Positions 32,471 through 63,533 of a DNA stretch of 64,000 nucleotides are shown in pieces. Source of the DNA: Hypanus sabinus (taxonomy: Eukaryota); NCBI RefSeq assembly GCF_030144855.1, contig NC_082706.1:154752001-154816000 (forward strand), given 5' to 3'. The translations under genes and the position numbers were made by a program. The notes beneath the pieces were generated by a model, which had not been told where the DNA came from, did not search any database, and saw only the letters and a program-made list of their open reading frames with translations. Every line of letters begins with the position of its first letter. Positions within the stretch are counted from its first letter, which is position 1.

Positions 32471-34721
32471 TGTACAATCGGGCCACAATGGATCCAACAT
32501 ACCCCAGACGTCTGAGAGTGCCCTGGAACAGGGAGTGATGCTGGGGAGGCCCCAGAACCTGCTGGACTCCGTCTGTTCAGGGCAGTGGAGCCGCTTTCTG
32601 CCAATGTAGCTGATCTTGTGGCCCAGACTCGGGTCACTCCAGCTGTCCCAGAGCGCCCATCAACATTCTGTGACTGCACTTTCCTCCTTGCCCTCCATAT
32701 TCTCGCTTACTCCTCCCATCCAAGAACCCCATCTGCCACCTCCAGAAAGGTACTCAGGTGAGCCCGGTACCTGCTGCTCTTTTCTTTCCCAGTGCACCCT
32801 CATTTTTGAATTACAACCGACAACATTTCTGACTGATCGAGCCAAGGTGGCCTACGTCATCACTCAGCTCTCCGGTCACGGGAGAGAATGGGGAACAGCC
32901 ATCTGGGAGGCAGGCTCACCTTTCTGCATCAGTATTTTCAGAGGGAGGTGTTCCAGAGGGTCCCTGGAGGCACTGGGTGAATTCCGAGCTCCTCATCAGT
33001 CTATATTGCCCTGCTGTTTTCCCCATCTACAATTTCCGTTCCAGACCCTGAAGCTATGAAGTTTGCCTGTACCCACCTGACGCCAACTGAAAGACAAAGG
33101 AGAATCAACACCCGCTCCTGTCTGTACTGTGGCCAACCAGGCCCCTTCACCTCCACCTGCCCAGTAAAAGCCAAGCACTCACCAGTACTCTTCGTCCTAC
33201 TGGTGAGTGTGACCCCTGTCCGGCCCTCCTCAATGCCAATCACACTCATACCTGCTTCGGGACTGGGGCGTCCAATGGTGAGCAATCTCCGTCTTGGTCA
33301 ATTCTGGTGTGGAGGGGTGTTTTATCAATTCTGGCTTGGCTGTCCAGTGGGGATTACCCACGTCTGCTCTCTAGTCACCATTGGTGGCCAGAGCCTTGAT
33401 CGATCAGAGACTGGCGAACATCACCCATGTCACGGTCCCGGTGAGTCTCTCAGTGGAAAAGAAGGACAGCTCCCTCTGGGGACTGAATGAAGTCACTGTT
33501 AAGATGTGTTATCCACTTCTACTCGACCTCGGCATTTGAGCTACTGCAAGGAGCCTCAGTTTTCACCAAGCTTGAACTCCGTAATGCCTACCATCTTGTC
33601 CACATCTGCAAAGGGGCAACGCACCTCAGGCCATTACGAGTATCTGGTCTCACCAATGCCGCTGCCGTCTTCCAAACCCTGGTATATGATGTTCTCAGGG
33701 TAATGCTGAACCAATTTGTTTTTGTGTATCTCGATGACATTTTGATTTTTTTCTAAGTCCCTTGCTGAACACACAGGTCACATTTGCAGAGTTCTCCAGT
33801 GCCTTCTGAAAAATCAGTTCTTTGTGAAGGCTGAGAAATGTGAGTTTCATCACAATGCTGTCTCCTTCCTGGGGTATGTAATTTCAAGTGGTTCCATTCA
33901 GATGGACCAACAGAAGGTCAAGATGGTGGTTGATAGGTCCCAACCTTCGACTCATTGGGAGTTTCAACGCTTCTTGGGCTTTGCTAACTTCTATCGCCAT
34001 TTCATCAGAAATTACAGTATACTGGCTGCACCTCTCACTGCTCTTACCTCATCGGCTGTCAGATTCTCCTGGTCCCCTGCTACATTGCCCTGGGTTTTGT
34101 CACCAGTCTTCCCCCGTCTGATTATAACACCACCATTCTCACAGCAGTTGATCATTTCTCCAAGTTTGTATTCTTCATTCCTTTATCCAAACTCCCCTCT
34201 GCCTGTTTTTAAATGACATGTTTTTAAATTACTAGTACTGCATGTTTTTAAATGACATGGTTTAACTGTAACTGTTGTGTCAGACAGGGGCTATCAGTAC
34301 ACATCCAGCTTCTGGAGGGCATTCTGTAATCTTCTGGATGCCTCTGAGTTTGTCTAGAGAATTCCACCCACAGACCAATGGCCAGACCGAGCGGGCCAGC
34401 CAACAGCTAGAGACAGTATTGCGGTGTCTGGTCTCCCAGAACCCCTCTGCGTGGAGGCAGCAGCTATCCTGGGCCGAGTATGCCATAAACTCTCATCCGT
34501 CCTCATTCACTGGTTTGTCCCCCAAGTGCTGCCTTGGCCACCAGCCTCCACTGTTTCCTGCCCAGGAGGGTGAGGTTGGCGTTCCATCTGCCGTTGTCAG
34601 CGGAGGTGGAGGCACACTTGCTCTGCCCCTCTCCATGCCTCTGCTAGGATCAAGCATTTAGCTGGCCACATCGCTCCAAGGCCCCACGTTACCACCAGGG
34701 ACAGCATGTATGGCTTTCAAG
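32471..34721 (+). mobile_element. LTR-less copy of the internal region of the Tf1/sushi-like element at 59885-63533 (inverted duplicate)
   Basis: Gag PERYSGEPGTC...[21 protein letters not shown]...VYLDDILIF and [21 protein letters not shown]. The reverse complement matches 60803-63055 almost base for base. Confidence 0.95.
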
Positions 34722-34758
34722 TATGCTGTACATGTATACTATTAGCATGTATGGACTA

Positions 34759-35152
34759 CTGGTGGACAGGTAGAGTCAGGTGGGGGAGGAGCTGGTGGAC
34801 AGGTAAAGCCAAGTGGAGGAGGAGCTGGTGGACAGGTAAAGCCAAGTGGAGGAGGAGCTGGTGGACAGGTAGAGCCAGGTGGAGGAGGAGCTGGTGGATA
34901 GGTAAAGCCAAGTGGAGGAGGAGCTGGTGGATAGGTAAAGCCAAGTGGAGGAGGAGCTGGTGGATAGGTAGAGCCAGGTGGAGGAGGAGCTGGTGGATAG
35001 GTAGAGCCAGGTGGAGGAGGAGCTGGTGGATAGGTAGAGCCAGGTGGAGGAGGAGCTGGTGGATAGGTAGAGCCAGGTGGAGGAGGAGCTGGTGGATAGG
35101 TAGAGCCAGGTGGAGGAGGAGCTGACGGACAGGTAGAGCCAGGTGGAGGAGG
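34759..35152. repeat. 33-bp G-rich minisatellite, about 12 copies
   Basis: Unit ctggtgga(t/c)aggta(g/a)agcca(g/a)gtggaggaggag; explains the repetitive ORFs at 34706-35367. Confidence 0.96.
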
Positions 35153-35154
35153 AA

Positions 35155-35870
35155 GAGAGTTGAGATTGGGAGGCAATTATGGAAGTTGCTGTGAAAGCAA
35201 GATGGTAAGTGAAACCAGATAACAGGGATGATGGAAAAAAATGGGATCCAGTGGGTTGAGTGTGTGAGTGGGGGAAGGAGACTATAGGTTTGAAAAGGAG
35301 GGAAAGGACTTGGGAGGATTATTAGATAAAAAGAGGATATGTAGGTTACCTGAGTTGGAGAGTTCAATGTCTTTGTCGTTGGATTGTAGACTATTGAAGT
35401 GTTGTTCCTCTAGCATTCACTGGGTCATCATAGCATTGGAGGAGCCCATGGAGAGATAGTTTAGTGTGGGAATGGGGAGGGGAGTAAAATGGCTTGCAAC
35501 CAGGAGCTTAAGGTGGCTGTTGAGGACACAACATTTTTTTTGGGAGAAGTTTGATCTCACTAGTATAGAGGAGGTCTATAGCACTGAATGCAGCAGGTGA
35601 GGTTGAAGAAGGTGGATGTGAGTCTCTGGAACAGCTGTTAGGTCCCTGGATATGATGAAGGAGGAGGTGTACAGAGGGGTGGTACATCTCTTCCAGTTAC
35701 AGGGGAAAGTGTTTGGGGATGAGGCAGGATGGATGGGGAGGGAAATAGCAAACCAAGGACTCACGGGGAGAGTCATCAATGCAGAATGGGATGTGGCATT
35801 GAAGGGCTGGCAAGTTCTTCCAGCAAGTTTTGCTCCAGATCCTAGCACTGCAATCTCTTGTGTGTCCATA
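35155..35870 (-). mobile_element. Penelope-like element remnant (GIY-YIG region)
   Basis: Minus strand FPCNWKRC...YTSS..IQGP...LLYTSEIK resembles the Penelope endonuclease region, as at 57.2 kb; degraded. Confidence 0.6.
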
Positions 35871-36409
35871 ACCAAAGTAGTTCTTGGTTATACCATATCT
35901 TTAGTTATGTTGAGGTACATGAAAAAAATCTACATACTGCATTTCACACTAATTCCATTATGTGTCAATATGGAATGAGTCAAATTCTCTGAAACATGGG
36001 AACAAAATCAAGTGTAAAGTGATGCATGGTTTAGTTTCTTCACTTTTTATGTTTTGGTTTAGTATTTAAGTCACCTTTACCTTGCCTGTGTATACACAAT
36101 ACAAAATTTGGAAGCAATATAAACATTCAGTAAATCATGGCTGATCCTGAGTTGCATTCTCTGTGTTTCTAAACATTTTTAACCAAACCTCTGATTCTAT
36201 TAGGACCTAATTATCTTCTGTTTTCCACCTGAACACACTCAGAAACTGAAGATCTGCAGCTTTCTGTGGTAGACAATTACATAAAGTCATAACTCACTAC
36301 AAAACTAAATGTTTTACTTTTTCATTCTTAAACTGCAGAATCCCTTATCCTGAGATTCTTCCCAATCCAGCTGGATGAATCAGCCCCTCGACATTTTACC
36401 ATGTCAATA

Positions 36410-37281
36410 CAGTCTGCCCTTCTTATCCGCGAGGGATTGGTTCCGGGACCCCCCGCAGATTCCAAAAAATGCAGATGCTCAAGTCCATTATTCAACCTGC
36501 CTCTATGCGGTGAACATTAGGACCCAGCAGAACCCCAGACTTTATTTAACATGTCTCCGTGCGGTGGACATTAGGACCTGGTGGCGCAGTTCTGAATCCA
36601 CAGTGTTTCTGTTCACAAAAATAATCACGATTGAAAATAAAGTGGAAATAATAAAGCGATTGGAAAGAGGTGAAACACCATCGGTCATTGTAAAAGCGTT
36701 AGGCTACAGTCAGTCAATGATCGGAACAATTTTAAAAGAGAAAGGCCCTGCCCCAATGAAAGCTACAATTATTACTAAGCAACGCAGTGGTTTAATTATT
36801 GGGTTTTGGGGTTTTGAGTTTTTGATCCTCCACATCAACCTGGCACGAATGGAGAGCTCTCTCGGTAGCGGTGTGTCACTGGATCGAACCCAGCGCTGAA
36901 ACATACGCTTTTAAGTGTTTTATATGCATAGAAAGGTAAAATATATACTAAGACAAACATTTGACTGACATTAAATAATACCGGATGTACCTGTTCCGAC
37001 TTAGTAAGAGAACCTCCGATTTTTTTTTANNNNNNNNNNNNNNNNNNNNNNNNNNNNNNNNNNNNNNNNNNNNNNNNNNNNNNNNNNNNNNNNNNNNNNN
37101 NNNNNNNNNNNNNNNNNNNNNNNNNNNNNNNNNNNNNNNNNNNNNNNNNNNNNNNNNNNNNNNNNNNNNNNNNNNNNNNNNNNCTCAAACAACAAGCGCT
37201 GGAAGAGCACTTCTGGGTTTTCTTGATTCATGGTTGGTTGAATTCGCAGATGCGGAACTCACGGATAAGGAGGGTTGACTG
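36410..37281 (+). mobile_element. Tigger/pogo non-autonomous DNA transposon (spans the assembly gap)
   Basis: Imperfect TIRs CAGTCTGCCCTTCTTATCCGCGAG / CTCACGGATAAGGAGGGTTGACTG flanked by TA. CENP-B-type HTH remnant KIITIENKVEIIKRLERGETPSVIVKALGYSQSMIGTILK. Confidence 0.88.
37030..37183. other. Assembly gap (154 N)
   Basis: Run of N. Confidence 1.
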
Positions 37282-37901
37282 TACCTCAGAATCCTTGTCC
37301 TTATGACTTCATTTCTCACTCCCAACAAGCTCCAATGAAATATTTAAATGCAAGATCAAGTGGTAATACAGATATGATGGGTTAATAATTTGATTCCGTG
37401 CCACCTAAAGATTGCCTCACTTCAAAATGCAGAATACTGCACCACTGGATTTTGTCCTGCAACTTTGTAGTCAATACTAAATCAGGAATTGGTGAACATG
37501 CACGAAGTCTGTCTGAGAGCATATCTATTAGAATTACATAGAATGTTTAATAACGTGTAATATGAGCATAAAAAGCACTAAAGGAGAATAAAATTATGTG
37601 CTTTCCATTTACAAAAAAAATAGGTATTGAGTAATACTAAATGGGCAAAGCTTTTAACATAAGCAATTATTTTATTTTACCCATCACAGAGTTGCTGACC
37701 TAAAATATTTGACAGTCACATTTTGCAACATCTAGACTAAGCTTGCACATTCAAGCCAGAAGTAGTTCCGTTTCAGTGGTTTTCATCATTTAGTGAAGAT
37801 CTAATATTCTGGAGCTGCATGAATGTATGAGGCAAAGAAATTCTTTCAAATGTCTGTGAAATTTAAAATTCCATTTCTACATAGGAATTTTCAGTAGAAA
37901 G

Positions 37902-37982
37902 ATGGCAACTAACTGTGGAGCCTCTGATCCATGGCAAGAGTGTATGGACGTGGCAGTTGCTGTTGCCCGAAAAGCTGGAGGA
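37902..37982 (+). CDS. IMPA1: Inositol monophosphatase 1, first coding exon
   Basis: MATNCGASDPWQECMDVAVAVARKAGG, resembling human MADPWQECMDYAVTLARQAGE; GTGAGT donor at 37983. Confidence 0.94.
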
Positions 37983-40900
37983 GTGAGTAAATAATGGAAA
38001 TTGAATTTTGTTAACATTTTTATATTCATTTGACCATTCCCGTTGTATATTTTTTCATTTTAAAACATTATTTTAATTGTTCAGATGAAGAATTTGGTAG
38101 AAAACTTAATTTTAAACTCAAGCTTTTTTCTTTTTTTTTATTTCTAGTCCTTGGAAAATACTGTGGGAAAAAGTTGATTGTTTTGAGTAATGATTTTTTA
38201 AAACCAAAAATAAATAACCATGTGTGCAACAATAATTATTGATTATATGTTTGCTGCAGAAAATGCCATTACTTTATTTTTTTTAACCTTTCACCAACTC
38301 CACTGTTGCTCTCATATTGTTTGGTTCCTTTAATTCATTCTCTTTTGGCAGGATTAATTCCATTGTCCACAGCGACCCAGTGGCACATATTTTTTTCCAA
38401 TTGTTCAATTGGCATATCACTATCAGACATAGTTTTACAATTCCAGAATTGTTATATTTGAGTTTCCTGTAAATTAATCATGCTGTACAGTTTCATTGAT
38501 AATAGAAAAGTTTCTGTGTCAGGTTACTTGATGTGCTACAAATTTATTTCTTCCTCATAGCCTTGGTCAAAGTGAGGATAACAGCCCATTATTAACCAGG
38601 AAGCATTTGGGGTAGTGTGCATCAAGGAGCCCTGATAAAACTGGTCAGTTGGAATCAAAGGAAAAACACCCCAATGGCTGGACTCTTAACTGTCAAGGGT
38701 CCATCATTCCTGGATATCACTGTAGGGTTTGCTCAAAGGAGCATCCTAGACCTGGCCATCTTCCACTGCTTCAGTAATGGCCTTCCTTGCACTGTAAGGT
38801 CATAAGTTGGAAGCTTGCTGATGATTGCACAGTGTTAACTGCATTCACAATTTCTGAACAAATGAATTGGCCAATGCTTGCATGCAGTAAGATCCAGACA
38901 GCGTTCGGTACAAAGTGATAAAGTAGAAAGTGACAATTGTGTTGCAAAAATGTCAGGTAAGACTATTTTCAGTAGAGAGGGTAACTTTCTACTCTTGACA
39001 TTCAATAGCTGTGCTTGCCCCATCAGCAGCCTGAGGCGTGTTCATTAACCACAAGCTCATTTGAACAAGCCATGTAAACACTGTGACTGGAAGAGGAGGT
39101 CAGTATCTGGGTATCCAACAACAGTTGAATTAACTCTTGACATACCAAAACCTTTTTAGCACCTGTAAACACATGTCAGGAATGGGATAGTGTACTTTCC
39201 ACTTGACTAGGTGACTCCAGCCCCAAAACCGGTTGACACTAGCTCAGTGTTACCTGCAATAATGTAGCCTGCATGATTAGTTCACCTCCCACCACCACCT
39301 TTATTCACTGTTGGCACATGGTGTTTATATTGTGCCACCCGCAGGAAGTATTGCAGGCCGAGACTTGCTCAGGCTATTCTGACAATACCTTCAAAGTCTC
39401 TGATCTTCTGCAACAAGAAAGACAAAGGATTCTCATGCATGGTATTACCATCAACTGCACGTTCTCTTCCAAGACGCACACCATCCTGATAAGGGAGTAT
39501 ATTATTGCTTCTTATTGTTACTGGCTCAAAATCTCATAAGCCTAACCTAACTGCACTCAGGGACATTTTTACAAGAAGGATTGCAATGGTTGAAATGGCA
39601 GCTCACAGCCACCAGCTTCAGAACATATAGGGAAGGGTGATAAGTGACACCCTTTCCAACAACACCTGTTTTGAAAGCTAAATGAAAAATACTGAACCTT
39701 ACAGCTCATTTATGAGTGGGGTGATTTTCATTAAGCTACTGACAAATTGTAAATTAAGTTGCATATTTGAACTATAATGAGCTTTATATTTTCTTGGTGT
39801 TGTAATACATTATCAAAGCAGACTAATTATAAAACTATTAAAGGTACAGGTGACTGAAAACTTGTTTGATGAAGTGGAGTCAGAGGTAATGTAGGGGTAG
39901 GTTGATTGGTGTCTTAAAGGAGGTGATAATATGTGAAGTTTTGGGAAATAATTCTAGAAATTGGGATCTAAGGAGCAGAAGACAGCTGCTAAATTAAAAT
40001 CGGGAATGTTGACGAAGGATGAACTGGTGTGAATTTGTAGAAGGTTATAGGAGTGCAAGAGAATTGAAATTGAGTATTTATAGATTATGGAATTTACTGT
40101 AGTCAAGTGTAGAGGTAACAAAGATCACATTGGCAGACAAACTGTGGTAGAACTAGAATTAGAAAATGGTGGATATTGACTGTTTTTGCCCAAACAGTTG
40201 GGTTCAGTGTCTGAGCTAGAGAAGGGAGGATTTAGTGGAATGGATCATTCCTGTGTGCTCTGCTGTACAACCCTGGGTGCAGGAAATGTCAATGAATGGA
40301 GAACCCTGAGGCTGAATTTTTAAACTGTGAGCAATAATCAGTGTGACTATGTTCCGTCCATGAGCCTGAGTGTTTCGAAAAAAAGGTTTCAGGTGATGAT
40401 CATTCTGCAATTGGAGTGCAGACCAACAGGGAATGTGTGATTAGCAGAGAGATTAAAAGGGTAAGTGAGGATCCTAAGAGAATTATATTCTCTGATCAAT
40501 ACTCAATCCAGACTAGATCCAGTGTTTCTGATGTAGCAGATATGATTTCAAGATGTTGTTTCCCTTTTGTCAGCTGCAGAAAGTTATGGAGTTAAAGAGT
40601 GAACAACCAAAAAATTTTAGTCCATTTTGGGACTAATGGCATAATCAGAAGAAGATAAAATCTATGAGCATATCTTCAAGGTGTTAGGAAAGAGACTCAA
40701 AAGCAGGTAGGGATCTGTGAATTACTTACTTATCAACACTAGTGACAATAGCAATAATAAGGTAGCACAGCTAAATTTGCAGTGGCGAGGTGGTACAGAG
40801 GGGGGAGGGTTTTTGATCCCTAGTACATTTTGACCATTTCTGAGGAAGATGAAGCTTCTGTGTGCCAGACAGATAGCATTTCCCAGCAAGATTCACTTGT

Positions 40901-41216
40901 GCTTTCGGGGGGACCTTAAATTGATTTGTCTGGGGACTTGGCACAGCAAAACAGCGGTGAAAAATAGTAAATAGATTAGAAAAAGTAGGAAATGGTTATT
41001 TGCAAGGTAAGTGGCATCACAACACGAGAAGTGAAGGTAGCCCTATTGATAAGAGGAGATCATTACAGTGCTGGAGACCATGTCCTGGAACAATCAATAA
41101 CAGAACTGTTTCTAATCAGTCAGCATGGAGTTAGGTCATGGGGGAAATTAAAGGTTTAAAGAAATATTCCATTGTTTTCAGTTCTGATTGTTAAATTGCC
41201 CTTTTTTTCTCTGTAG

Positions 41217-41350
41217 GTTATTTGCGAAGCTTTGAAAAATGAAAAAACTGTTCAGATTAAAAGCTCCCCCGCAGACTTAGTGACTGAGACTGATCAAAAT
41301 GTGGAGAAAATGATTCTGTGTACTTTAAAGGAAAAATTTCCTTCTCACAG
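41217..41350 (+). CDS. IMPA1: IMPA1 coding exon 2
   Basis: VICEALKNEKTVQIKSSPADLVTETDQNVEKMILCTLKEKFPSH; canonical splice sites; 134 nt. Confidence 0.96.
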
Positions 41351-41651
41351 GTAAAGGATTTTTGAAATAATCTGAATACCTTGTGCCCTTAAGTACAAGA
41401 TTAATGACACAAAAAAAGATCTGTCAAGAAGTTTCCAAATGTGTTTTGATTGTGATAGTTTACAAATCCCTTAAAATATTGATCTATATTTGGTTTACTG
41501 TATATGACTTGGAAAAGATTTTGCTGTTATATTCATAAATTAAGGTAAGTGGTAGGAGAATAAGAGAAGAGTTAAGGATTTGTTTCTCCATCCACAGTGT
41601 TGAGAATCTGTGTTTCAGTGCTTGAAAGTGTGATGGGAAAAGAAACACATC

Positions 41652-44600: not shown

Positions 44601-45648
44601 GGCTTGCCCACAGAAGGCAAAGAGTGGTTGTAGACAGGTCATATTCTGCATGGAGGTCGGTCACCAGTGGGGTGCCTCAGGGATCTGTTCTGGGACCCTT
44701 ACTCTTTGTGGTTTTTATAAATGACCTGGATCAGGAAGTGGAGGAATGGCTTAGTAAGCTTGCTGATGACACAACAGTTGGAGGTGTTGTAGATAGTGTG
44801 GAGGGCTGTCAGAGGTTACAGTGGGACATTGATAGGATGCAAAACTGAGCTGAGAAGTGGAAGATGGAGTTCAACTCAGATAAGTGTGAAGGTTCATTTT
44901 CGTAGGTCAAAAATTATGGCAGAATATAGTATTAATGGTAAGACTCTTGGCAGTGGGGAGGATCAGAGGGATCTTGTGGTCTGAGTCCATAGGATGCTCA
45001 AAGCAGCTGTGCAGGTTGACTCTGTGGTTAAGAAGGCGTACGGTGTATTGGCTTTAATCACACGTGGAATTGAATTTAGGAGCTGAGAGGTAATGTTGCA
45101 GCTCTATAGGACCCTGGTCAGATCACTTGGAGTACTGTGCTCAGTTCTGGTCGCCTCACTCCAGGAAGGATGTGGAAGCCATAGAAAGGATGCAGAGGAG
45201 ATTTACAAGGATGTTGCCTGGATTGGGGAACATACCTTGTGAGAATAGGTTGAGTGAACCCAGCCTTTTCTTCTTGGAGTGACGAAGGATGAGAAGAGAC
45301 CTGATAGAGGTGTATAAGGTGATGAGAGGCATTGATCTTGTGGATAATCAGAGGCTTTTTCCCAGGGCTGAAATGGCTAACACGAAAAGGCACAGTTTAA
45401 GGTGCTCGGAAGTAGGTACAGGGGTAATGGGTAAGTTTTTTACACAGAGTGCGTGGAATGGGCTGCCGGCGACAGTGGTAGAGGCGGATATGATAGGGTC
45501 TTTTAAGTGACTCCTGGATAGGTACATGGAACTTAGAAAAATAGAGGGCTATGGGTAACCCTAGGTAATTTCTAAAGTAAGTACATGTTCGGCACAACAT
45601 TGTGGGCTGAAAGGCCTGTATTGTGCTGTAGGTTGTCTATGTTTCTAA
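41652..45648 (+). mobile_element. Near full-length CR1 LINE (ORF1 zinc finger/esterase, ORF2 APE-RT), frameshifted
   Basis: CTRCVELQLL, VIGDSIVRG...HIGTNDIG (ORF1); ITETW, YRPPN, YMDFSKVFDKVPH, SGVPQGSVLGP, ADDT, MRRDLIEVYK (ORF2); tctatgtttcta tail. Confidence 0.95.
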
Positions 45649-49659: not shown

Positions 49660-49764
49660 CTTTATTGGTGAAGAGTCAGTTGCAGATGGAGCAGCAAGTA
49701 TACTTACAGACAATCCCACGTGGATCATTGATCCCGTTGATGGGACCACTAATTTTGTCCACAG
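49660..49764 (+). CDS. IMPA1: IMPA1 coding exon 3 (metal-binding motif)
   Basis: [34 protein letters not shown], with the GEE and DPxDGT inositol monophosphatase signatures; 105 nt. Confidence 0.97.
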
Positions 49765-49942
49765 GTATGATAATTTAGCTGCAATAGGTTTTATGTTTGT
49801 GGAGAAGTGCGTATCATATGAGCAGACTAGAACTGGTTTGTGTTGCTAAACGTAATAACACAAATTGTTTTGAAATCACTGAAAAGACTTAAATTTGGAG
49901 AAATAGCTATGGGTTGCTCATTTCAGATTTCTTTTTTTACAG

Positions 49943-49988
49943 ATTTCCTTTTGTAGCGGTTTCTATTGGATTTTATGTAAATAAACAG
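49943..49988 (+). CDS. IMPA1: IMPA1 coding exon 4
   Basis: FPFVAVSIGFYVNKQ; canonical sites; 46 nt. Confidence 0.95.
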
Positions 49989-50598: not shown

Positions 50599-50707
50599 AG
50601 TGAAATTGGTGTTATATATAGCTGTGTGGAGGATAAGATGTACACAGCTCGAAGAGGGCAAGGAGCATTTTGCAATGGGCACCAGATGTGTGTTTCTAAA
50701 CAGGAAA
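50599..50707 (+). CDS. IMPA1: IMPA1 coding exon 5
   Basis: SEIGVIYSCVEDKMYTARRGQGAFCNGHQMCVSKQE; GTAAGT donor; 109 nt. Confidence 0.96.
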
Positions 50708-52678: not shown

Positions 52679-52787
52679 ATATAAGCAAAGCTCTTATTGT
52701 AACTGAGCTTGGATCTAATCGCACACCAGAGATTGTGAAGACAGTACTTTCAAACATGGAGAAACTAATTTCTATTCCAAGTCATGG
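52679..52787 (+). CDS. IMPA1: IMPA1 coding exon 6
   Basis: ISKALIVTELGSNRTPEIVKTVLSNMEKLISIPSHG; 109 nt. Confidence 0.96.
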
Positions 52788-52829
52788 GTAGGTATCTTTC
52801 ACAAGTGAAATATAAAACTAATCTATATT

Positions 52830-53140
52830 AAGGTGTGGTACAGTAGTGTAGCACTGAGCGTAACACACTACAGCAGCAGTGATATGGGTTCAATTCCCAG
52901 CACTGTCAATAAGGAGTTTGTGCATTCTCCCCATAATCTAGTAGGTTTCTTTCCACCTTCCAAAGACCTGCAGGCTAGTAAGGGTTAATATGTTGTGGGC
53001 ATGCAATGTTGCTGCTGGAAGCATGACGACATGATCGCAGCCCCCAGCACATCTTTGGACTGTGTTGGTTGTTGATGCAAATGACACATTTCACTCTATG
53101 TTTTGATGTATATTCAACAAATAAAGCAATAAAGCTAATC
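52830..53140 (+). mobile_element. tRNA-derived SINE
   Basis: A-box-like start, B-box GGTTCAATTCC at ~52887, central ggagtttgtgcattctcccc domain, aataaagc tail. Confidence 0.6.
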
Positions 53141-53769
53141 CCTCTAATTTGCTATTCAATGGGATAAGGATTTTCTTAATAGCTAGCAAATGATTGTTTT
53201 GTTTGAAACTCCCAGGATGATTTGAGAAGTTCTATCACTTTTGGAGCCAGTTTTCAAGACTAGTCCCAAATCATTAGCTGTTGTTTATTTAGCCACTGAC
53301 AGGAAAGATCCTCCTTTGAATTGTTTTGGCAGTATCAAATGCAATATTTTGTGCATGGATTTAAAAACAATGGGCTAGAGAGAACTGATATGTCAAGAAA
53401 AACTGAGTAGATCTCATCAAACTTTCAGATTATGAGAGGAATGTTAGATAGTCTTTAAATATGATTTCCAGAAAATGAACTGAGTGGAAGGCAATATCAT
53501 TAGCAAGGACATATCCAAGTACAATTAACTGCTGAGATTACCTGTGGCATGAACTGAGCTTTCTGATTTTTGAGGCCTTGTTTGCCAGCAAGGCTTTGCA
53601 TTACATAATGGAGTCATATAAGCAAGCCCCAATCCTTCAGCAGTTCTCAGCTTTACTACCTGTCAAAACTTTCAATAATTCTTGAAGTTACCAAGATTCA
53701 GAAGGATTTAAAAACAGCTACTGATAATGGAAAACAAAGACTATTCTAAACAGAGAAAATTTAAAAATC

Positions 53770-54440
53770 TAGATGCAAAGGGACTTGGAAGTCCTTGTGC
53801 AGAATTCTGTAAAGGTTAACTTGCAAGGTGAGGTAATGGCAAGCAAGGTAAATATTAGGGATTCTTTTTGAGAGGACTAGAATATAAGAGCAAGGATGTA
53901 ATGCTGAGGCTTTATAACGCATTGGTTGGATGGTTTTGGCACCCTTATCTAACAAAAGATGTGCTGGGATTGGAGGGTTTCCAGAGGTGGTTTACGAGAA
54001 TGCTTCTGGGAACGAAAGGGTTAATATGTGAGTAGTTCTTGATGCCTCTGGGCCTATACTCACTGGAGTTTAGAAGAATGAGAGGAGTCTCATTGAAACC
54101 TATCTAATATTGAAAGACCTAGATTCAGTGGATGTGTAGAGGACGTTTCCTATGGTAGATGAGTCTCGGACCAGAGGACACAGCCTCAGAAAAGATGGAT
54201 GTTCATTTAGAACACAGATAAGGAGGAATTTCTTTAGCTAGAAAGAAATGTGGTGAATCTGTGGAATTCATTGCCATGGACAGCTGTGATGACTAAATCA
54301 TTGAGTTTATTTAAAGTGGAAGTTGATAGGTTCTCGATTAGACAGTGTGTCAAAGGTTATGGGGAGTAGGCAGAAGAATGAGGTTAAAGTGGTTAATCAG
54401 ATATGACATAATGGCCTGCTTCTGCTCAGGTCTTATGATA
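53770..54440 (+). mobile_element. CR1 LINE 3' fragment
   Basis: Same family as the 12.2 kb and 25.3 kb copies, in the opposite orientation. Confidence 0.8.
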
Positions 54441-54596
54441 TCAAAAATAACTAAGGGAAGATGCTTCACTGCATGGGACATATTAACCTCTTACCAGGGG
54501 CACAATTTCACTGTGCACTTTAAAGGAGTTGGGGAGGGGAAATTTTGTGAGGAGAGTTTACATTAAGTTTTAAATTATTTCTTGAATATTTTTCAG

Positions 54597-54748
54597 AATT
54601 CGAGCTTTAGGATCTGCAGCAATAAACATGTGCATGGTGGCATCTGGTGGTGCCGATGCCTACTATGAAATGGGTATTCACTGCTGGGATATGGCAGCAG
54701 CTGCACTCATTGTCACAGAGGCTGGCGGTGTTGTGGTGGATATATCAG
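54597..54748 (+). CDS. IMPA1: IMPA1 coding exon 7
   Basis: [50 protein letters not shown], with the WDxAA...EAGG signature; the [10 protein letters not shown] segment is IMPA1-type rather than IMPA2-type; 152 nt. Confidence 0.97.
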
Positions 54749-55928
54749 GTAGCCTTGAATATTCTGTTTTGTAAATGTAACATATTATTTTTTAGATCAT
54801 GGTTTTCCTAATAAAAGGGTATCTTGTTACATCTACAATCCCAATTCACAATCTTTTCAGCTCTAATCTTTTTAATCCACACGTGTTCTTTGATACCAGC
54901 ATCACTTTTTCTCAATACTGGATCTCGGCCCAAAACATTGACTATCTCGTTGCCTCCACCGATTCTGCTTGGCCTGCTGAGTTTGTTTTCTGGCTGGATC
55001 TCAGCACCTATAGTTGGTGTGCCAGTATTTTGTATTGCATCTCTCAGTTTACTTTGCTGCCTTTCTAATTGTGTTGATGTACATCCAATATCCAATCTCT
55101 GGTCATCGCAATTTCTTACTGTAACAAACTGAATTAATTATTTTTAGCTCCCACACCAGTCATTATCTTTGTCACCGTTTCCACTTTGCTACCTTGCACT
55201 GTTGCCATCTGAGTTAGATCATTAGCATCTTTGCATCCCTTTCTGATTCCATTTGTGCTTTTTTATCTAACCCAAGGAACCACAAGTTTAAAATTCTTAT
55301 TCACATTGGATTCATCTGTCTGTCTGTCAAATCAATTTTAATTGTACACCATCTATATTTTCTCTATATTCCTGACTCTGGTCCTTTATGTATACTCTCA
55401 ACTCATTTCCCCACAATTTTCATCTGTGATTTCGGCTTTTAGGGTCCACTGTCTACAATTCTCTTCCAGAATTACTGCTGCTCTCCACTTCCCAACTGCC
55501 TTTTCCTTTAATACACTTCAAACGTTCATCATTATACATATTTCTGTTCACTTCTGAAGTATTACTTGGTTTAGTGTCAGTTTTATTTTGCTGAAGTCTC
55601 AGAAATGTCTTAAATCCTTTTATTTTAAAGGTGTTGTTCAATTGGATGTTGTTGCTTGCTTATCAAATTCAACTAAATTAAGTTTCATGCTAATGGTACA
55701 AGGTTTATTTTCTGACTTGTTTCCACACGGTCTGTAGAACAAAGACTAAATAAAAGTAGAAAACCTGGAGCTACTTTATGTGCCAGGCAACTCTTGTGCT
55801 TCCTCCAGAGATACTGTTTGAACTCCTGAGTATTTCCAGCAAATCTTCTTTTTATTTTGGATTTCTAGCACTGGTTTGTTTTGCCTTTTACTATTAATAT
55901 TTATTTCTTTTGATGTATTTTATTTTAG

Positions 55929-56044
55929 GAGGCACGTTTGATCTGATGTCACGGAGAGTGATTGCTGCAAGCAGCAAGGCAATTGCAGAAAGGATTGCAC
56001 AGGAAATTCATATAATCCCTTATCAGAGGGATGATCAGGAATAA
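55929..56044 (+). CDS. IMPA1: IMPA1 last coding exon
   Basis: GTFDLMSRRVIAASSKAIAERIAQEIHIIPYQRDDQE*. The spliced CDS is 852 nt (283 aa). AATAAA at 56428. Confidence 0.96.
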
Positions 56045-56959
56045 AGATAATGAAATGTATTTCTTAAACGTTTACTACATGTAATCCAATTTAAATAGAT
56101 TTTCACATTGTCTGCACATGTACTGAGAATATTTGAGCCCGGTAAGTGAAAATGATAAATTAGTCAGGTTCAGTATCTGACATGAATGTGCATGTAGCAC
56201 AGTTTCATTGAATGTTATAAATGTTATCAATATACTACCAAAAAAAAAATCCTGCTTCTGCTGAAGTTGATGGATTAGAGTAATATAATTAAAATTTGGA
56301 CCTTTGCTATCATTTGTTGTATGGGATATTTCCTTGTAATTGAATGGTATACAAAAGCTTATCTTCTTTATATTTAATGAGTGGAAATAAGTACATAAGT
56401 GAAATGCAATTTATACATATATGTAGTAATAAAAGGGGTTGATATAAGTTGAATATTGTTATGCCATGTACTTTTCATGTGGAAAGACTTGGTATTTTTA
56501 TTAGATATATCCAGGTATTTTTTTTAATAGATTTTTTAAAAATTCTATCCATTCTTGCTTGCAGGACATCTGTTATCCTTGGTCAGTGAGCTTCAGATCT
56601 AATTCCTAAATTAATCTTTTTGTCTTTTTCAGCTTTACTTAATTTTCCTCGTTGAACAATTTTAAAATGCTGTGCACCTTTGAGACTGTTTGGTCATATT
56701 ATTTAAATTACATGCTTAGATGAGGAAACTGCTTTGCCGAGCACCTATGCTGGTCTGCAAGAATAAGCAGGATCTCCCAGTGGCCACCCATTTCAATTCT
56801 AACTCTTCTGTTGCCTACAAGTGAACAGGTTAATTAAGTATTGTAAGATCCTCAAGTTTTAAGAATTATTGGACTCTTTTTTGTGGGTATTCATATGTTG
56901 TAAATTATGGAGAGTAGCACAACCTCATGTTTACCAAGAAAGGCTAACAAATGGTGCAA

Positions 56960-57365
56960 CACATATAATATGCTGGAGAAACTCAGCAGGCCAGGCAGCA
57001 TCAATGGAGAAGAATAAACAGTCAGTGTTTCAGGCTGAGACCCTTCATCAGGACTGGAGAAAAAATGAGAAGTTAGAACAAGAAGGTGGACGGAGAGGAG
57101 AACTGACCATGGACTGATATGTCAGGATATGAATGGGAAGTAGAATTAAAATGGGTGGCCACCGGGAGATCCCACTTTTTCTAGTAGATGGAGCATAGGT
57201 GCTGGGCAAAATGGTCTCCTAATCTACAGCGGGTCTCACCGATATACAGGTGGCTGCACTGGGAGCACCTGATCCCAACAGACTCACAGATGAAGTGTCG
57301 CCTCATCTGCAAGGACTGTTTGGGCCCTGAATGGTAATGAGGGAGGAGGTGTAGGGACAGGTGTA
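56960..57365 (-). mobile_element. Penelope-like element 3' fragment with GIY-YIG endonuclease and terminal repeat
   Basis: Minus strand TCPYTSSLITIQGP...CSQCSHLYIGETRCRLGDHFAQHL, followed by the terminal repeat carrying the CTGATGA...GAAA motif. Confidence 0.8.
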
Positions 57366-58677
57366 TTTTGGTGCCAGCTATTTATTCTTAGAAGATATGG
57401 ACTAGAATTAAGAACAGAGCAACTAAAACTAATTCAAATCAAATAAACAATTCCCACTAATGTAATTGTTCCCACCTATTGCACGGTTCAGTTTTGTCAC
57501 TTAACCTTCTGGTTAATTGTATATTCATGGAGCCATCCTTCACCACTGGTTTCAAAAGGGGTATACTTTGGGTGTCTGAAATTTGTATTCAGAGTGGTTC
57601 TGCTAGTTGGGATTTCCTACCATTGTAAATATGTATTGCTGTAAATTTACCCATGTTCAAAATGTTAAAGTTAAGTGATTATAGCAATTAATTGTTTGTT
57701 ATCTTTGATTTGAAGTAGAAAACATCCTGCCAAGAAAGTGAGGTGCTCCTAGACACTCTCAACTGGAGGTTTGCTGTGTAAGTGAAGACTTTTATATTTC
57801 CCAGTTACAGATTCTGTGTGGCTCAGTTTTAGTTGGGCACATGTGAATGCTTGTCTGGGACACACTCATGACCCATCATGTGGCCTGACCTTAACAGTTT
57901 AAGGGATTGAATTTCTTTTTAAGAATAGCATCCCACACTTTGATCTGTTCAGGTCAACAGCCACAGGATCACAAAATATCAAAGAACATGGCAGATAGCT
58001 TAACTGGTAAATATGAAAGTGTGTGTGTGTTTGTCTAAGAGTGAGATTTTCTTGGACTCTCTCCTGGAGGTTTACTGTGTGAATAAAGGCTTTTATATTC
58101 CCAGTCACAACTTCTGTATGGCTCAGCTTTAGTCAGCCACAACGGGAGAAACATCTGAAGGCGGCTCAGTTTACTTCCACAGATCATGGTTTTCTAAAAA
58201 GCTACTGCAGACATAGTAAAATCTAAATACATAAGAAATTGAGACTTTTTAAATTTTATATAAACCTGTGAAAGTAAGATCCAGAATCAGCAAGCAGTCG
58301 GGTTTGTTCATTTGCAGGGGCAACTTATTTCACATTGTTAACTATACAGTATACCAGCTCAGCAAGTGATTTTACAGTCCACGAGGAATAGTCTTACATC
58401 AGTGTGTATCTGATGTACAACTATTTGTGAGAGTTCCATGTAGAATGGCTTCACCTACCAAGGCCTCAAGGTCCAGAATTCCTTCAGCCATGCCTCTTTG
58501 ATTCAATACACCCTTTACCCTGTTGCAGGCAGCCAAACTATCCATCTCTCACAGCTGTGGAAGTCTTCTCTTTAAGCAGATTCCATCATGAACCTATAGT
58601 CTACCTGGAATACTGAATGGCCTCTAACTGAAATCCCAGAAAGGAGTTGAGTCTGGCACTTGTGATGGAACAAGCAA

Positions 58678-59884
58678 ACCCTATTTTACTAAGCTCCATG
58701 TACCTATCCAAAAGTCTCTTAAAAGACCCAATCGTATCCATCTCCACCACCGTTGCCGGCAGCCCATTCCACACACTCACCACTCTCTGAGTAAGAAACT
58801 TACCCCTGACATCTCCTCTGTACCAATTCCCCAGCACCTTAAACCTGTGTCCTCTTGTGGCAACCATTTCAGCCCTGGGAAAAAGCCTCTGACTATCCAC
58901 ACGATCAATGCTTCTCATCATCTTATACACCTCTATCAGGTCACCTCTCATCAGCCTTCGCTCCAAGGAGAAAAGGCCAAGTTCACTCAACCTTTTCTCA
59001 TAAGGCATGCTCCCCAATCCAGGCAACATCCTTGTAAATTTCCTCTGCACCCTTTCTATGGCTTCCACATCCTTCCTGTAGTGAGGCGACCAGAATGAAT
59101 GCTCAGGGCTGATCCATTTGCCAATCTCCTGCCTTCTCACCACTGACTCAACCTGTATGTTACCTTTAGGAAATCTTGCATGAGGACTCACAAGTCCCTT
59201 TCACCTCAGAATTTTGAATTCTTTCCCCCCCCCCCCCCCCCACTTAGATAATAGTCTATGCATTTATACCTTCTACCAATCCACTTGGCCATACACTTCC
59301 CAACACTGTATTCCATCTGCCATTTCTTTCCCGTGCTCCGAAACTGAAGTCCTGCAGCTGCCCTGCTTCCTCAATACTACTGGCTGCTCTTCCCATCTTC
59401 TACTGTCCACAAACTTGGTCAAAAAGCCATCAACTGCATCATCCAAATCATTGACATATAACGTGAAAAGAAGTGGCCCCAACACTGACCCCTGTGGAAC
59501 ACCACAATTCACTGGCAGCCAATCAGAAAAGGCTCCCTTTATTCATACTGTTTGCTTTATATCAGTCAGCCAATGCTCTAGCTATGCCAATGCCTTCCCC
59601 ATAAAACAATGGGCTGTTATTTTGCTAAGCAGCCTCATATGCAGCACCTTATCAAAGGCCTTCTGAAAGTCAAAGTAAACAATATCCACCGATTCACCTT
59701 TGTCTATCGTGCTCGTTATTTCCTCAACCAATTCCAACATATTTGACAGGTAAGATTTCCCTTTGGAAATAATAATTGACTTTGGTCCATTATATGCCTC
59801 CAAGTACCGAACTCATCCTTAACAACTTATCAACCACTGAGGTCAAGCTAACTGGTTTGTAGTTTCCTTTCTTCTGCCTCCCTC
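58678..59884 (-). mobile_element. CR1 LINE fragments (the older one continues at 63534-64000, beyond the LTR insertion)
   Basis: [25 protein letters not shown]...MRGDLIEVYK; CGVPQGSVLGP; YFDFQKAFDKV. Confidence 0.9.
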
Positions 59885-62800
59885 TGTCAGGATGCTGGAA
59901 TGGGGGTCCAATCACAGACCCAGTACTGTGCATACAGTGATATTAATTGAGTAACAAATCCCAAGGTGTAGATCAAGTTAGTGTCAAAGTTCAGGCAGAG
60001 ATCAAAACATCCAGAGAAATCCAAAAACCAGAATCGGGAAACAGGCAGAGTCAATATTCAGACAGACAGAGTTCAGATACAAATGCTGAACAGGCTCAGG
60101 AAAATTCACTGGCACAATCTGGCAACAAACAGGTGAAAACACGGGACTAAAATATACTGAGCAATAAACAGAGAGGCAGATGATAGGTGGAGCGCAATGA
60201 GATGGAAGCGCCAGCAAAAAAGGTAATAATGAGAAACAGGTGAGAGGTGGAGTACTCAGTGATACAGGGGCCGGAGTAGAGCAGGAGCGGGGTCAGGAGC
60301 ACATGGGAATACAAAACCACAGGCTGACAGCGAGGGGGAAAAACACACAAAAAGACAAAGTTCAACTAGAAGTACTGACAGTAACCCCCCACCCATCTCT
60401 ACGGACACCTCCTAGTGTCACAGCAGGTAAAGCTGGGTGCTGCCGATTAAAGTCCCTGATGAGAGAGGAGTCCAGGATGTTACGGGCGGGGGCCCTGGCA
60501 CCTCTCCTCAGGACCGTAGCCCTCCCAGTCCACAAGGTACTGGAGGCCACGACCCCAGCGACAAACATCCAGCAGTTGATGCACCGTGAAGGCTTCTGAC
60601 CCATCGATGAGGAGGGGGTTTGTGGACAGGACACAGGGGTGGCTCATGAAAGGCTTGATGCAGGACACATGGAAGGTGGGATTAATGCAGCGGAGAGTTG
60701 AGGGGAGCTTGAGACAGACTTTAGCAATGGGAAAGGGGCCGATGAAGTGGGGGGAGGGGGGTTGCGAGCTTGTTGGAATCCACCTTGAGAAGCTGGTCTC
60801 GGCTTGAAAGCCATACATGCTGTCCCTGGTGGTAGCGTGGGGCCTTGGAGCGATGTGGCCAGCTAAATGCTTGATCCTAGCAGAGGCATGGAGAGGGGCA
60901 GAGCAAGTGTGCCTCCACCTCCGCTGACAACGGCACATGGAACGCCAACCTCACCCTCCTGGGCAGGAAACAGTGGAGGCTGGTGGCCAAGGCAGCACTT
61001 GGGGGACAAACCAGTGAATGAGGACGGATGAGAGTTTATGGCATACTCGGCCCAGGATAGCTGCTGCCTCCACGCAGAGGGGTTCTGGGAGACCAGACAC
61101 CGCAATACTGTCTCTAGCTGTTGGCTGGCCCGCTCGGTCTGGCCATTGGTCTGTGGGTGGAATTCTCTAGACAAACTCAGAGGCATCCAGAAGATTACAG
61201 AATGCCCTCCAGAAGCTGGATGTGTACTGATAGCCCCTGTCTGACACAACAGTTACAGTTAAACCATGTCATTTAAAAACATGCAGTACTAGTAATTTAA
61301 AAACATGTCATTTAAAAACAGGCAGAGGGGAGTTTGGATAAAGGAATGAAGAATACAAACTTGGAGAAATGATCAACTGATGTGAGAATGGTGGTGTTAT
61401 AATCAGACGGGGGAAGACTGGTGACAAAACCCAGGGCAATGTAGCAGGGGACCAGGAGAATCTGACAGCCGATGAGGTAAGAGCAGTGAGAGGTGCAGCC
61501 AGTATACTGTAATTTCTGATGAAATGGCGATAGAAGTTAGCAAAGCCCAAGAAGCGTTGAAACTCCCAATGAGTCGAAGGTTGGGACCTATCAACCACCA
61601 TCTTGACCTTCTGTTGGTCCATCTGAATGGAACCACTTGAAATTACATACCCCAGGAAGGAGACAGCATTGTGATGAAACTCACATTTCTCAGCCTTCAC
61701 AAAGAACTGATTTTTCAGAAGGCACTGGAGAAGTCTGCAAATGTGACCTGTGTGTTCAGCAAGGGACTTAGAAAAAAATCAAAATGTCGTCGAGATACAC
61801 AAAAACAAATTGGTTCAGCATTACCCTGAGAACATCATATACCAGGGTTTGGAAGACGGCAGCGGCATTGGTGAGACCAGATACTCGTAATGGCCTGAGG
61901 TGCGTTGCCCCTTTGCAGATGTGGACAAGATGGTAGGCATTACGGAGTTCAAGCTTGGTGAAAACTGAGGCTCCTTGCAGTAGCTCAAATGCCGAGGTCG
62001 AGTAGAAGTGGATAACACATCTTAACAGTGACTTCATTCAGTCCCCAGAGGGAGCTGTCCTTCTTTTCCACTGAGAGATTCACCGGGACCGTGACATGGG
62101 TGATGTTCGCCAGTCTCTGATCGATCAAGGCTCTGGCCATCAATGGTGACTAGAGAGCAGACGTGGGTAATCCCCACTGGACAGCCAAGCCAGAATTGAT
62201 AAAACACCCCTCCACACCAGAATTGACCAAGACGGAGATTGCTCACCATTGGACGCCCCAGTCCAGAAGCAGGTAGGAGTGTGATTGGCATTGAGGAGGG
62301 CCGGACAGGGGTCACACTCACCAGTAGGACGAAGAGTACTGGTGAGTGCTTGGCTTTTACTGGGCAGGTGGAGATGAAGGGGCCTGGTTGGCCACAGTAC
62401 AGACAGGAGCGGGTGTTGATTCTCCTTTGTCTTTCAGTTGGCGTCAGGTGGGTACAGGCAAACTTCATAGCTTCAGGGTCTGGAACGGAAATTGTAGATG
62501 GGGAAAACAGCAGGGCAATGTAGACTGATGAGGAGCTTGGAATTCACCCAGTGCCTCCAGGGACCCTCTGGAACACCTCCCTCTGAAAATACTGATGCAG
62601 AAAGGTGAGCCTGCCTCCCAGATGGCTGTTCCCCATTCTCTCCCGTGACCAGAGAGCTGAGTGATGACGTAGGCCACCTTGGCTCGATCAGTCAGAAATG
62701 TTGTTGGTTCAAAAATTCAAAAATGAGGGTGCACTGGGAAAGAAAAGAGCAGCAGGTACCGGGCTCACCTGAGTACTTTTCTGGAGGTGGCAGATGGGGT

Positions 62801-63533
62801 TCTTGGATGGGAGGAGTAAGCGAGAATGTGGAGGGCGAAGAGGAAAGTGCAGTCACAGAATGTTGATGGGCGCTCTGGGACAGCTGGAGTGACCCGAGTC
62901 TGGGCCACAAGATCGGCTACATTGGCAGAAAGCGACTCCACTGCCCTGAACAGACGGAGTCCAGCTGATTCTGGGGCCTCCCCAGCATCACTCCCTGTTC
63001 CAGGGCACTCTCAGCCGACTGGGGTATGTTGGATCCATTGTGGCCAGATTGTACAGCCAGGATGATGGAACAGGGATCTAATTGCAGACTCAGCACTGTG
63101 CACACAGTGATAGTAATTGAGTAACAAATCCCAAGGTGCAAACCAAGTCAGCGTCAAAGTTCAGGCAGAGATCAAAACATCCAGAGATATCCAAAAACCA
63201 GGATCAGGAAACAGGCAGAGTCAAAATTCAGACAGAGTTCAGATACAAATGCTGAACAGGCTCAGGAAAACTCACTGGCACAATCTGGCAACAAACAGGT
63301 AAAAACACAGGACTGAAATACACTGAGCAATAAATAGAGAGGCAGATGATAGGTGGAGCACAGTGAGATAGAAGTGGCAGCAAAACAGGTAATAATGAGA
63401 AACAGGTGAGAGGCGGAGTACTCAGGCCGGAGTAGAGCAGGAGCGGGGACAGGAGCACATGGCAATACAAAACCACAGACTGACAGCTGGGGGAAACATG
63501 CAAAAAGACAAAGTTCAACTGGAGTTATCGACA
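59885..63533 (-). mobile_element. Ty3/gypsy chromovirus (Tf1/sushi group) LTR retrotransposon, internally deleted
   Basis: LTRs at 59885-60380 (TGTCAG...CTGACA) and 63055-63533. 5-bp TSD CCCTC (59880-59884 and 63534-63538). PPT next to 60381. gag-RT-IN remnants and chromodomain [30 protein letters not shown]. Confidence 0.95.

Follow-up and report, generated by a model that had tools for sequence, protein, structure and literature searches.

A decayed Ty3/gypsy element and a probable inverted partial copy of it enclose the IMPA1 coding exons in the ray Hypanus sabinus

We examined a 64-kb window of the Hypanus sabinus genome (the whole stretch of 64,000 nucleotides at positions 154,752,001 to 154,816,000 of NC_082706.1, whose first letter is position 1 of all coordinates given here) in which the coding exons of the gene IMPA1 are enclosed by two long inverted repeats. 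The reverse complement of 60803-63055, the downstream arm, corresponds to 32471-34721, the upstream arm, with 27 mismatches and one 2-bp indel; blastn recovers the pair as one alignment of 2253 columns at 98.71% identity (98.7% overall). A repeat search splits the same pair into a long part of 1907 nt at 99% (32815-34721/60803-62709) and a short part of 342 nt at 97% (32471-32812/62714-63055), and a global alignment that includes 150-nt flanks counts 28 difference events and finds an abrupt loss of similarity at both ends of the arms. An earlier note on this DNA had claimed near-identical inverted arms of ~2.25 kb around all the IMPA1 coding exons, and on this the repeat search, the blastn alignment and the exon model described below agree. 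The evidence presented here suggests that the downstream arm belongs to an old retrotransposon, that the upstream arm is a copy of part of it made by DNA repair, and that the two arms have since exchanged sequence.

The IMPA1 exons were modeled with tblastn, using the full-length relative P0071, followed by a splice-site model. This yields eight coding exons on the plus strand (37902-37982, 41217-41350, 49660-49764, 49943-49988, 50599-50707, 52679-52787, 54597-54748 and 55929-56044), all with AG/GT at their borders, that together preserve an intact frame of 283 amino acids. Against solved structures the exon-7 peptide scores 79 bits with IMPA1 and 63 bits with IMPA2; the motif WD.A[AG]G was not found in the IMPA1 of the window, where the ray has WDMAAA. 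The AG acceptor of exon 2 precedes the ATG by 18 nt, and the segment 31601-32100, which lies outside the cassette, is the only stretch from 20.7 kb to the end of the window with a GC content of at least 0.5 and a CpG observed/expected ratio of at least 0.6. This plus-strand CpG island is the presumed IMPA1 promoter and non-coding exon 1, with a GT donor near 31934/31935. Since the only CpG island near the gene lies outside the arms, and since exon 2 has its acceptor so close to the start codon, IMPA1 is likely to have a non-coding exon 1 on the far side of the upstream arm; the same two features make likely the earlier proposal that this arm falls between the promoter with exon 1 and the exon bearing the ATG.

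Logan contigs from four runs were placed on the segment 30600-36500, namely X1 and X2 from the organism of the window (study P1), X18 from organism G and X19 from organism E. The P1 contigs begin at 31907 and cover exon 1 and intron 1, with nothing at 30797-31584 except repeats. Although X1 and X2 are labeled 'DNA?', they are probably RNA, as they total only ~236 million letters at a depth of ~10 and have no cover upstream of 31907. If P1 is indeed RNA, IMPA1 transcription would start near 31.9 kb and the upstream arm would lie within the pre-mRNA. At the other end of the gene, 4.8 kb separate the stop codon from the start of the downstream arm, and the last AATAAA/ATTAAA (58082) lies 2.7 kb before it. 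The P1 runs contain 0.40-0.53 of the words of 57800-59884, a value that is ambiguous and neither proves nor excludes read-through, as the runs may be RNA or DNA. The CpG island and intron 1 are themselves flanked by SINE-like, very high-copy short repeats at 30600-30744, 31585-31712 and 36408-36500, whose summed contig depth exceeds that of unique sequence by a factor of hundreds to thousands in each of the four runs.

The only run of N in the window is an assembly gap at 37030-37183, in the part of IMPA1 intron 1 that separates the upstream arm from the ATG exon. It is preceded by a poly-T run, lies 2.3 kb from the upstream arm and ~700 bp before the exon-2 acceptor (37883/37884), and touches no reading frame and neither arm. 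The spacing of the arms, 26,081 nt, and the relative orientation of the contigs on either side rest on the scaffold across this gap; the scaffold orientation agrees with the plus-strand exon-1 donor, the exon-2 acceptor and the order ZFAND1-IMPA1.

The sequence around the downstream arm is that of an internally deleted, chromovirus-like Ty3/gypsy long terminal repeat (LTR) retrotransposon on the minus strand (59885-63533), and the arm is part of its interior. In the sense of the element, the 5′ LTR occupies 63055-63533 and the 3′ LTR 59885-60380, the latter running TG...CA; both LTRs end in CA, one begins with TG and the start of the other has mutated to AG. A target-site duplication (TSD) CCCTC stands on either side, at 59880-59884 and 63534-63538. 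The two LTRs, which are the only LTR copies that blastn finds in the window, differ by 46 mismatches in 479 aligned columns (90.4% alike, with 17 further gap columns), giving a Kimura two-parameter (K2P) distance of 0.104. This distance, together with the matching 5-bp TSD, indicates a single old insertion, in keeping with the earlier estimate of ~10% LTR difference and with the observation that only the downstream copy has a TSD. The minus strand carries fragments of open reading frames in the gypsy order: gag, a CCHC knuckle, a reverse transcriptase (RT) fragment with YLDD, the end of the integrase core, and traces of an SH3_Tf2-1 domain and of a chromodomain. The DUF4939 gag match, at 31.3 bits, is above the Pfam cut-off; RVT_1 (27.1), SH3_Tf2-1 (26.3) and Chromo (16.9) fall below theirs because the frames are broken. 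Protease, most of the RT, RNase H and the N-terminus of the integrase have been lost. The downstream arm proper (60803-63055) runs from the end of the integrase core, through the RT fragment that gives the RVT_1 match, back to the first base beside the 5′ LTR; the interior that has no counterpart in the upstream arm (60381-60802) comprises the integrase C-terminus with the SH3_Tf2-1 and chromodomain traces and a polypurine tract, the purine run GGGTGGGGGG in element sense, which adjoins the 3′ LTR at 60381-60394 (reverse complement). A TGG 8 nt past the 5′ LTR is a candidate primer-binding site. Just before the target site of the element, at 59582-59803 on the minus strand, we also noticed a LINE-type reverse transcriptase fragment with a weak RVT_1 match (E 0.0056).

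The family to which this element belongs is of high copy number in organisms E and G, with hundreds of copies, the bins over the arm reaching hundreds of times the unique depth, values that hold to an order of magnitude only. In organism G (X18) the arm bins stand at 2800-6300, compared with ~19 for the unique flank. Estimates of copy number from depth were otherwise set aside, all runs being contigs. Most family contigs of these relatives are less than 95% alike to the arms. Each arm of the window contains a duplicated 17-mer (34204/34243 and 61265/61304), which the earlier note had taken to be private to the pair; since 20 contigs from family copies of a relative cover the second copy with one changed base (34254), the duplication is probably a feature of the family.

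The upstream arm is a partial copy of this element without LTRs. It sits in intron 1 of IMPA1 with the retrotransposon in sense orientation (plus strand) and contains the side of the primer-binding site, gag (with the DUF4939 match), the CCHC knuckle, the RT fragment and the end of the integrase core, starting at the first base beside the 5′ LTR of the parent and ending inside the integrase. Neither an LTR near 32471 or 34721 nor a 5-bp TSD around the arm was found; what brackets it is a 10-nt direct repeat, ATGCTGTACA, accompanied by filler. Because of these three features, the sequence indicates that the upstream arm is not an integrase-mediated insertion, which, with the junction scars, bears out the earlier view of it as a secondary, local copy of an element that had already decayed.

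The junctions preserve a considerable amount of detail. The outer filler (32432-32470, plus strand) reads, from left to right, ATGCTGTACA, ATC, ATGTT, TGTACAAT, TGTACAA and ACAAAT, followed by the start of the arm, TGTACAATC. Within it, 32434-32444 is an extra 11-nt copy of the LTR/internal edge of the source, two LTR bases included; three of the four TTGTACAA motifs in the window stand here; and no perfect palindrome in the window is longer than the 22-nt one at 32446-32467. The inner filler (34722-34758, plus strand) starts with a T after the end of the arm, continues with the same 10-mer ATGCTGTACA (34723-34732), repeats at 34744-34754 a stretch of 11 nt from the end of the arm itself (34703-34713), and then gives way to a minisatellite of twelve 33-bp units with 96% matches (34759-35153). 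With random flanks as controls, a match as good as the left 11-mer to the source end occurred in 7 of 3000 trials, matches such as those at the inner junction in 9 and 61 of 3000, and all junction matches jointly in none of 3000. The junctions hence display shared stretches of 8-11 nt, an extra 11-nt copy on each side and a 22-nt palindrome, a combination that points to a microhomology-mediated templated DNA copy of the neighboring element, of the kind attributed to microhomology-mediated break-induced replication (MMBIR) or synthesis-dependent microhomology-mediated end joining (SD-MMEJ). As the abortive copy on the left holds LTR bases, the template would have been the neighboring DNA or a full-length strand rather than a reverse-transcription product trimmed at the primer-binding site. 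The motif TGTACA is its own reverse complement, so that a plus-strand 3′ end ...GCTGTACA in intron 1 could pair with the plus strand at 63048-63057 and, by copying backwards, give rise to exactly this inverted arm. A LINE-mediated retrocopy was considered as a source of the 10-nt bracket and rejected, the insert having no 3′ tail and a 5′ end that is not an RNA start.

The differences between the arms are distributed unevenly. By global alignment, the outer 240 bp contain 10, the next 800 bp 13 and the inner 1200 bp 5, a gradient significant by permutation and close to the earlier count by eye of about 10, 10 and 5. Divided otherwise, the segment 32471-32820 has 15 differences in 350 bp (4.3%), 32821-33450 has 8 in 630 bp (1.3%) and 33451-34721 has 5 in 1271 bp (0.39%), while CpG density is similar across the three segments. 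The best single change-point, at 32819, has a likelihood ratio of 21.6, with 0 of 500 permutations as extreme, and coincides with a 10-bp cluster at 32810-32819 that contains three mismatches and the 2-bp indel; outside it the divergence is 4.3% and inside it 0.68% (13 differences in 1901 bp). Over their full length the arms differ by 1.2%, ~8 times less than the K2P of 10.4% between the LTRs. The resulting order of divergence is LTRs 0.104, outer arm 0.043, the split from the related species 0.024 and inner arm 0.004-0.007.

These values acquire their meaning from the related organisms. The unique flanks of organism E (X19) differ from the window at 62 of 2565 nt (2.4%), and one contig of E, at 34679-34873, bridges the inner junction, truncated at the same point, by covering 43 nt of the arm and 152 nt of the flank before it enters a shorter form of the minisatellite (joint 34873->35117; in organism G the minisatellite is deeper). 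This contig is 5% diverged from the window, which marks it as E's own DNA. In the organism of the window, X1 and X2 contigs that begin inside the arm likewise cross 34721 and continue into the unique sequence on its right (33894-34814 and 34215-34814); the pieces listed for these two runs include none across the outer junction. On the outer side, a left-flank contig of E reaches 29 nt into the arm and stops at 32499, as contigs are expected to do where unique sequence meets a repeat. Organism G, 2.3% diverged, has a contig that leaves the window at 32461 and enters an inverted copy of the SINE-like repeat 31585-31712, so that its left flank has either a lineage-specific insertion or a different structure at the outer junction and is uninformative on the arm. 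Because organism E has the same truncated inner junction, the copy seems older than the split from E. If it does predate that split, at least 45.6 differences would be expected in the inner 1901 bp, and 13 are seen (P about 1e-8). The outer block, at 4.3%, exceeds the divergence between the species, as an old copy that had escaped conversion would. Hence, given that a sister organism ~2.4% diverged already has the truncated junction of the upstream arm, the best reading of the pattern is that gene conversion between the arms homogenized the inner 1.9 kb. The earlier note had regarded homogenization as a possibility, which these figures now strengthen; its accompanying claim, that the arms are much younger than their parent, applies to the inner part only, the outer 350 bp suggesting that the copy predates the species split.

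Individual sites add some texture to this picture. At 34272 (61252, where the plus strand has G) both arms have C, and all X1 and X2 contigs, including those that reach the unique flank, have A, the common letter of the family; this suggests either a very recent arm-to-arm copying event in the reference individual or an error of the reference or its polishing. The two arms also agree with each other, against most family contigs of the relatives, at 20 listed sites, as would be expected if each arm were the closest kin of the other. Sites at which G and E show none of the window's letter are suggestive only, as contigs drop rare variants. The A..T combination at 33248/33259 is most simply a segregating single-nucleotide polymorphism. 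The mosaic letters of X1 contigs at 32873 and 33791 were not retained as evidence of conversion since bubble popping can produce them, and the changes at ten sites, with 4 weak-to-strong and 2 strong-to-weak, are uninformative on GC-biased conversion.

Putting these observations together, we propose the following history, which as a whole we regard as somewhat more probable than its negation. A chromovirus-like Ty3/gypsy element would have inserted antisense to IMPA1, ~3.8 kb downstream of its stop codon, and then decayed. Later, a DNA end that had broken or stalled within IMPA1 intron 1 would have been repaired by microhomology-primed inverted copying of 2.25 kb of this neighbor, its 3′ end ...GCTGTACA having paired with the palindromic TGTACA at the LTR/internal edge of the element ~30 kb away, and several abortive rounds of priming may have left the short templated copies and the 22-nt fold-back palindrome. 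The copy would have been present in the common ancestor of this species and its sister organism. Thereafter, repeated non-reciprocal recombination between the arms would have homogenized the inner 1.9 kb, stopping at the cluster of indel and mismatches at 32810-32819, such that the outer 350 bp retain the true age of the copy. The resulting structure is most likely a neutral by-product and would be a competent substrate for inversion by homologous recombination. Of this account, the anatomy, the signatures at the junctions, the pattern of divergence and the occurrence of the inner junction in other samples and one sister organism are observed, and the repair pathway, the relative dating, the role of conversion and the neutrality are inferred.

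Several points weigh against this history. A scaffold gap lies between the arms; the contigs are at most 921 nt long, so that the whole 2.25-kb arm is never spanned and the orientation of the spacer is known from the assembly individual only; and polishing of the assembly could overstate the likeness of the arms. Under a DNA-level copy, the placement of the outer breakpoint at the LTR edge becomes a coincidence of where the palindromic motif happens to lie. At 34272 the reference could be wrong on both arms, or a bubble may have been popped in the contigs. The evidence from the other species comes from short contigs, which contain 43 nt of the arm on the inner side and no more than 29 nt on the outer, short of the 31-nt rule; organism G says nothing on the arm; and the loss of rare variants from contigs means that the arms of E and G are not directly comparable.

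Among the rival explanations, the least probable is that the assembler misplaced or duplicated one arm near the gap at 37030. The proximity of that gap, 2.3 kb from the upstream arm, and the lack of any read across a whole arm speak in its favor, but the upstream arm has unique sequence on both sides, its inner junction is crossed by independent contigs from two samples and a sister organism, its junctions carry signatures of repair, and the 28 differences between the arms fall into a structured pattern. An explanation with a better claim, though still an unlikely one, would have the upstream arm arise as a recent duplication after the split from the sister organisms, with the gradient produced by the local mutation rate, for instance near the promoter, and without any conversion. 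A young copy is indeed the simplest account of an overall arm divergence (1.2%) below the flank divergence to E and G (2.3-2.4%), and at the left junction E's contig contains no more than 29 nt of the arm and that of G departs at 32461. Yet the 5% diverged E contig bridging the truncated inner junction, with its 43 nt of arm and 152 nt of flank, conflicts with such an origin; a tenfold difference in rate within 2.25 kb (4.3% against 0.39%) is unsupported by CpG density; and the flank beside the outer part is only ~2.8-3.2% diverged between the species. To a comparably small probability we assign the possibility that the upstream arm began as a captured reverse-transcription product, or as an independent truncated insertion of the family, and was later homogenized with a chance neighbor. 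The start of the arm within 1-2 bases of the LTR/internal boundary would be accounted for, the primer-binding-site end being a natural end of cDNA, and the hundreds of family copies in related organisms (the X18 depths given above) would provide ample sources. But the abortive copy at 32434-32444, with its two LTR bases, implies a template that ran into the LTR; the first 9 nt of the arm contain an 8-nt spacer, which should be absent had the template been trimmed at the primer-binding site; it is improbable that an insert would arrive 26 kb from a near-identical source, unless the arms started out ~10% diverged and were then subject to conversion; and even the unconverted outer part is 95.7% alike, above most family contigs (mostly <95%).

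A different kind of rival concerns function. The perfect tracts of 443, 352 and 289 bp shared by the arms make homologous recombination between them plausible, the minimum perfect tract for this process being roughly 200-300 bp. Inversion of 34722-60802 would detach every coding exon from exon 1 and the CpG-island promoter and bring the coding exons, in sense, behind the old 5′ LTR. All four junctions between arm and flank are the same in both orientations of the spacer, and only molecules spanning a whole 2.25-kb arm could discriminate between them; the on/off allele suggested by the earlier note is thus to be seen as a mechanistic possibility only. It is conceivable, but very improbable in our estimation, that the arms constitute a flip-flop maintained by conversion, which would create a promoter-swap or null allele, heritable or somatic, of this lithium-sensitive inositol monophosphatase, with a 2.2-kb RNA duplex formed by read-through as a second layer. 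Equally slim is the prospect of selection having maintained the structure as a functional device, be it a flip-flop that uncouples IMPA1 from its promoter or puts it behind the 5′ LTR, or a source of long double-stranded RNA (dsRNA). In support of such a device one might point to the promoter lying outside and all coding exons inside the arms, to the likeness of the arms being kept across a species split, to the coding block presumably reading away from the 5′ LTR in sense after a flip, and to the presence in the P1 runs of 0.40-0.53 of the words beyond the last AATAAA. Against it, there are neither a recombinase nor short specific sites: a search for a recombinase-type switch found only broken gag/pol frames in the arms, and an Rfam scan of the whole window returned nothing. 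Moreover, the arms are pseudogenized transposon sequence whose identity conversion alone explains, the downstream arm lies outside the predicted mRNA, and inversion would most likely produce a null allele of IMPA1, the loss of which is harmful in both mouse and human.

The upstream arm lies in intron 1 and the downstream arm in no intron; a dsRNA between them needs read-through past 58082 to the downstream arm, and a circular RNA across the last IMPA1 exon would have no donor site to use. Separately, we observed further inverted pairs of an older repeat, 48432-48819/58678-59065 (91%) and 45145-45398/58842-59095 (88%), which set IMPA1 introns against the region just beyond the 3′ end of the gene, closer to the end of the transcript than the arms are; in transcripts that extended that far, dsRNA would arise from these pairs sooner than from the 2.25-kb arms. 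Elsewhere in the window, a direct repeat of ~0.9 kb at 90% identity (15829-16701/20112-20997), with a CpG-rich stretch in each copy (16101-16400 and 20301-20700), lies between the ZFAND1 promoter and IMPA1, and self-comparison reveals a tandem array of ~157-bp units at 3655-4295 within a CpG island (3301-4500).

On the proposed history of a repair-made and partly converted copy, the locus would offer a clean and datable vertebrate example of an inverted partial transposon copy made by repair, with its junction scars preserved, and of partial concerted evolution with a sharp boundary at a small heterology. Its geometry makes the coding block of an essential gene invertible, and a simple population test in rays could measure the frequency of recombination between 2-kb inverted repeats separated by 26 kb and show whether conversion tracts are blocked by heterology. 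The locus also urges caution in dating, as the identity of the arms would record the time of the last conversion and not the age of the duplication.

The constituents of this structure have parallels in several known systems. The FLNA-EMD and F8 intron-22 inversions are instances of inversion mediated by inverted repeats. Polymorphic human inversions of this kind involve kilobase-scale repeats that flank segments of 5-226 kb and have their breakpoints where identity is highest; the authors also discuss recurrence and gene conversion, and in one inversion the first exons of a gene are cut off from its remainder (Aguado et al. 2014, PMC3961182). The IMPA1 arms resemble these in being kilobase-scale, highly identical inverted repeats, some of which are made of transposon pieces in the human cases too, but consist of a single 2.25-kb retrotransposon fragment, at the small end of the range, in a ray host and with only one orientation known here (compare PMC3961182). 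In Saccharomyces, a 24-kb flip/flop segment is flanked by a continually homogenized 4-kb inverted repeat, both orientations are documented, and the identity of the repeats is read as concerted evolution (Salzberg et al. 2022, PMC9731477). The spacer in yeast is similar in length (24 against 26 kb), and there too the repeats are older than species splits and nearly identical within a genome; the yeast repeats hold functional genes, whereas the IMPA1 arms are dead transposon sequence, homogenized in part and known in one orientation. Sex-chromosome palindromes with gene conversion from arm to arm are reportedly described by Rozen et al. (2003), and primate X palindromes are the subject of bioRxiv 10.1101/2020.12.29.424738. 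Such palindromes share with the IMPA1 arms the trait of spacer-separated arms far more alike than their age predicts, but their arms measure 9 kb to 1.45 Mb and carry testis genes, while the IMPA1 arm is a 2.25-kb piece of transposon with the gene in the spacer.

As for the origin of the upstream arm, the MMBIR model envisages annealing at microhomology, synthesis of low processivity and repeated switches of template, in either orientation and over tens of kb (PMC2621351), and short fold-back templated insertions at breaks are described in PMC11724301. The IMPA1 arm shares with MMBIR, fork stalling and template switching (FoSTeS) and SD-MMEJ the microhomology of 8-11 nt, the short templated copies and the fold-back palindrome (PMC2621351, PMC2943611, PMC4912351 and PMC11724301), as well as, with MMBIR-type events, an inverted template tens of kb away on the same chromosome. 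Those models derive from human copy-number variants and experimental breaks, whereas the pathway at IMPA1 is read from a fossil junction at least one speciation old, and the 2.25-kb insert is long for fill-in of the polymerase-theta type and short for break-induced replication. Across all these comparisons, the IMPA1 cassette is a known kind of structure and not a new kind of system.

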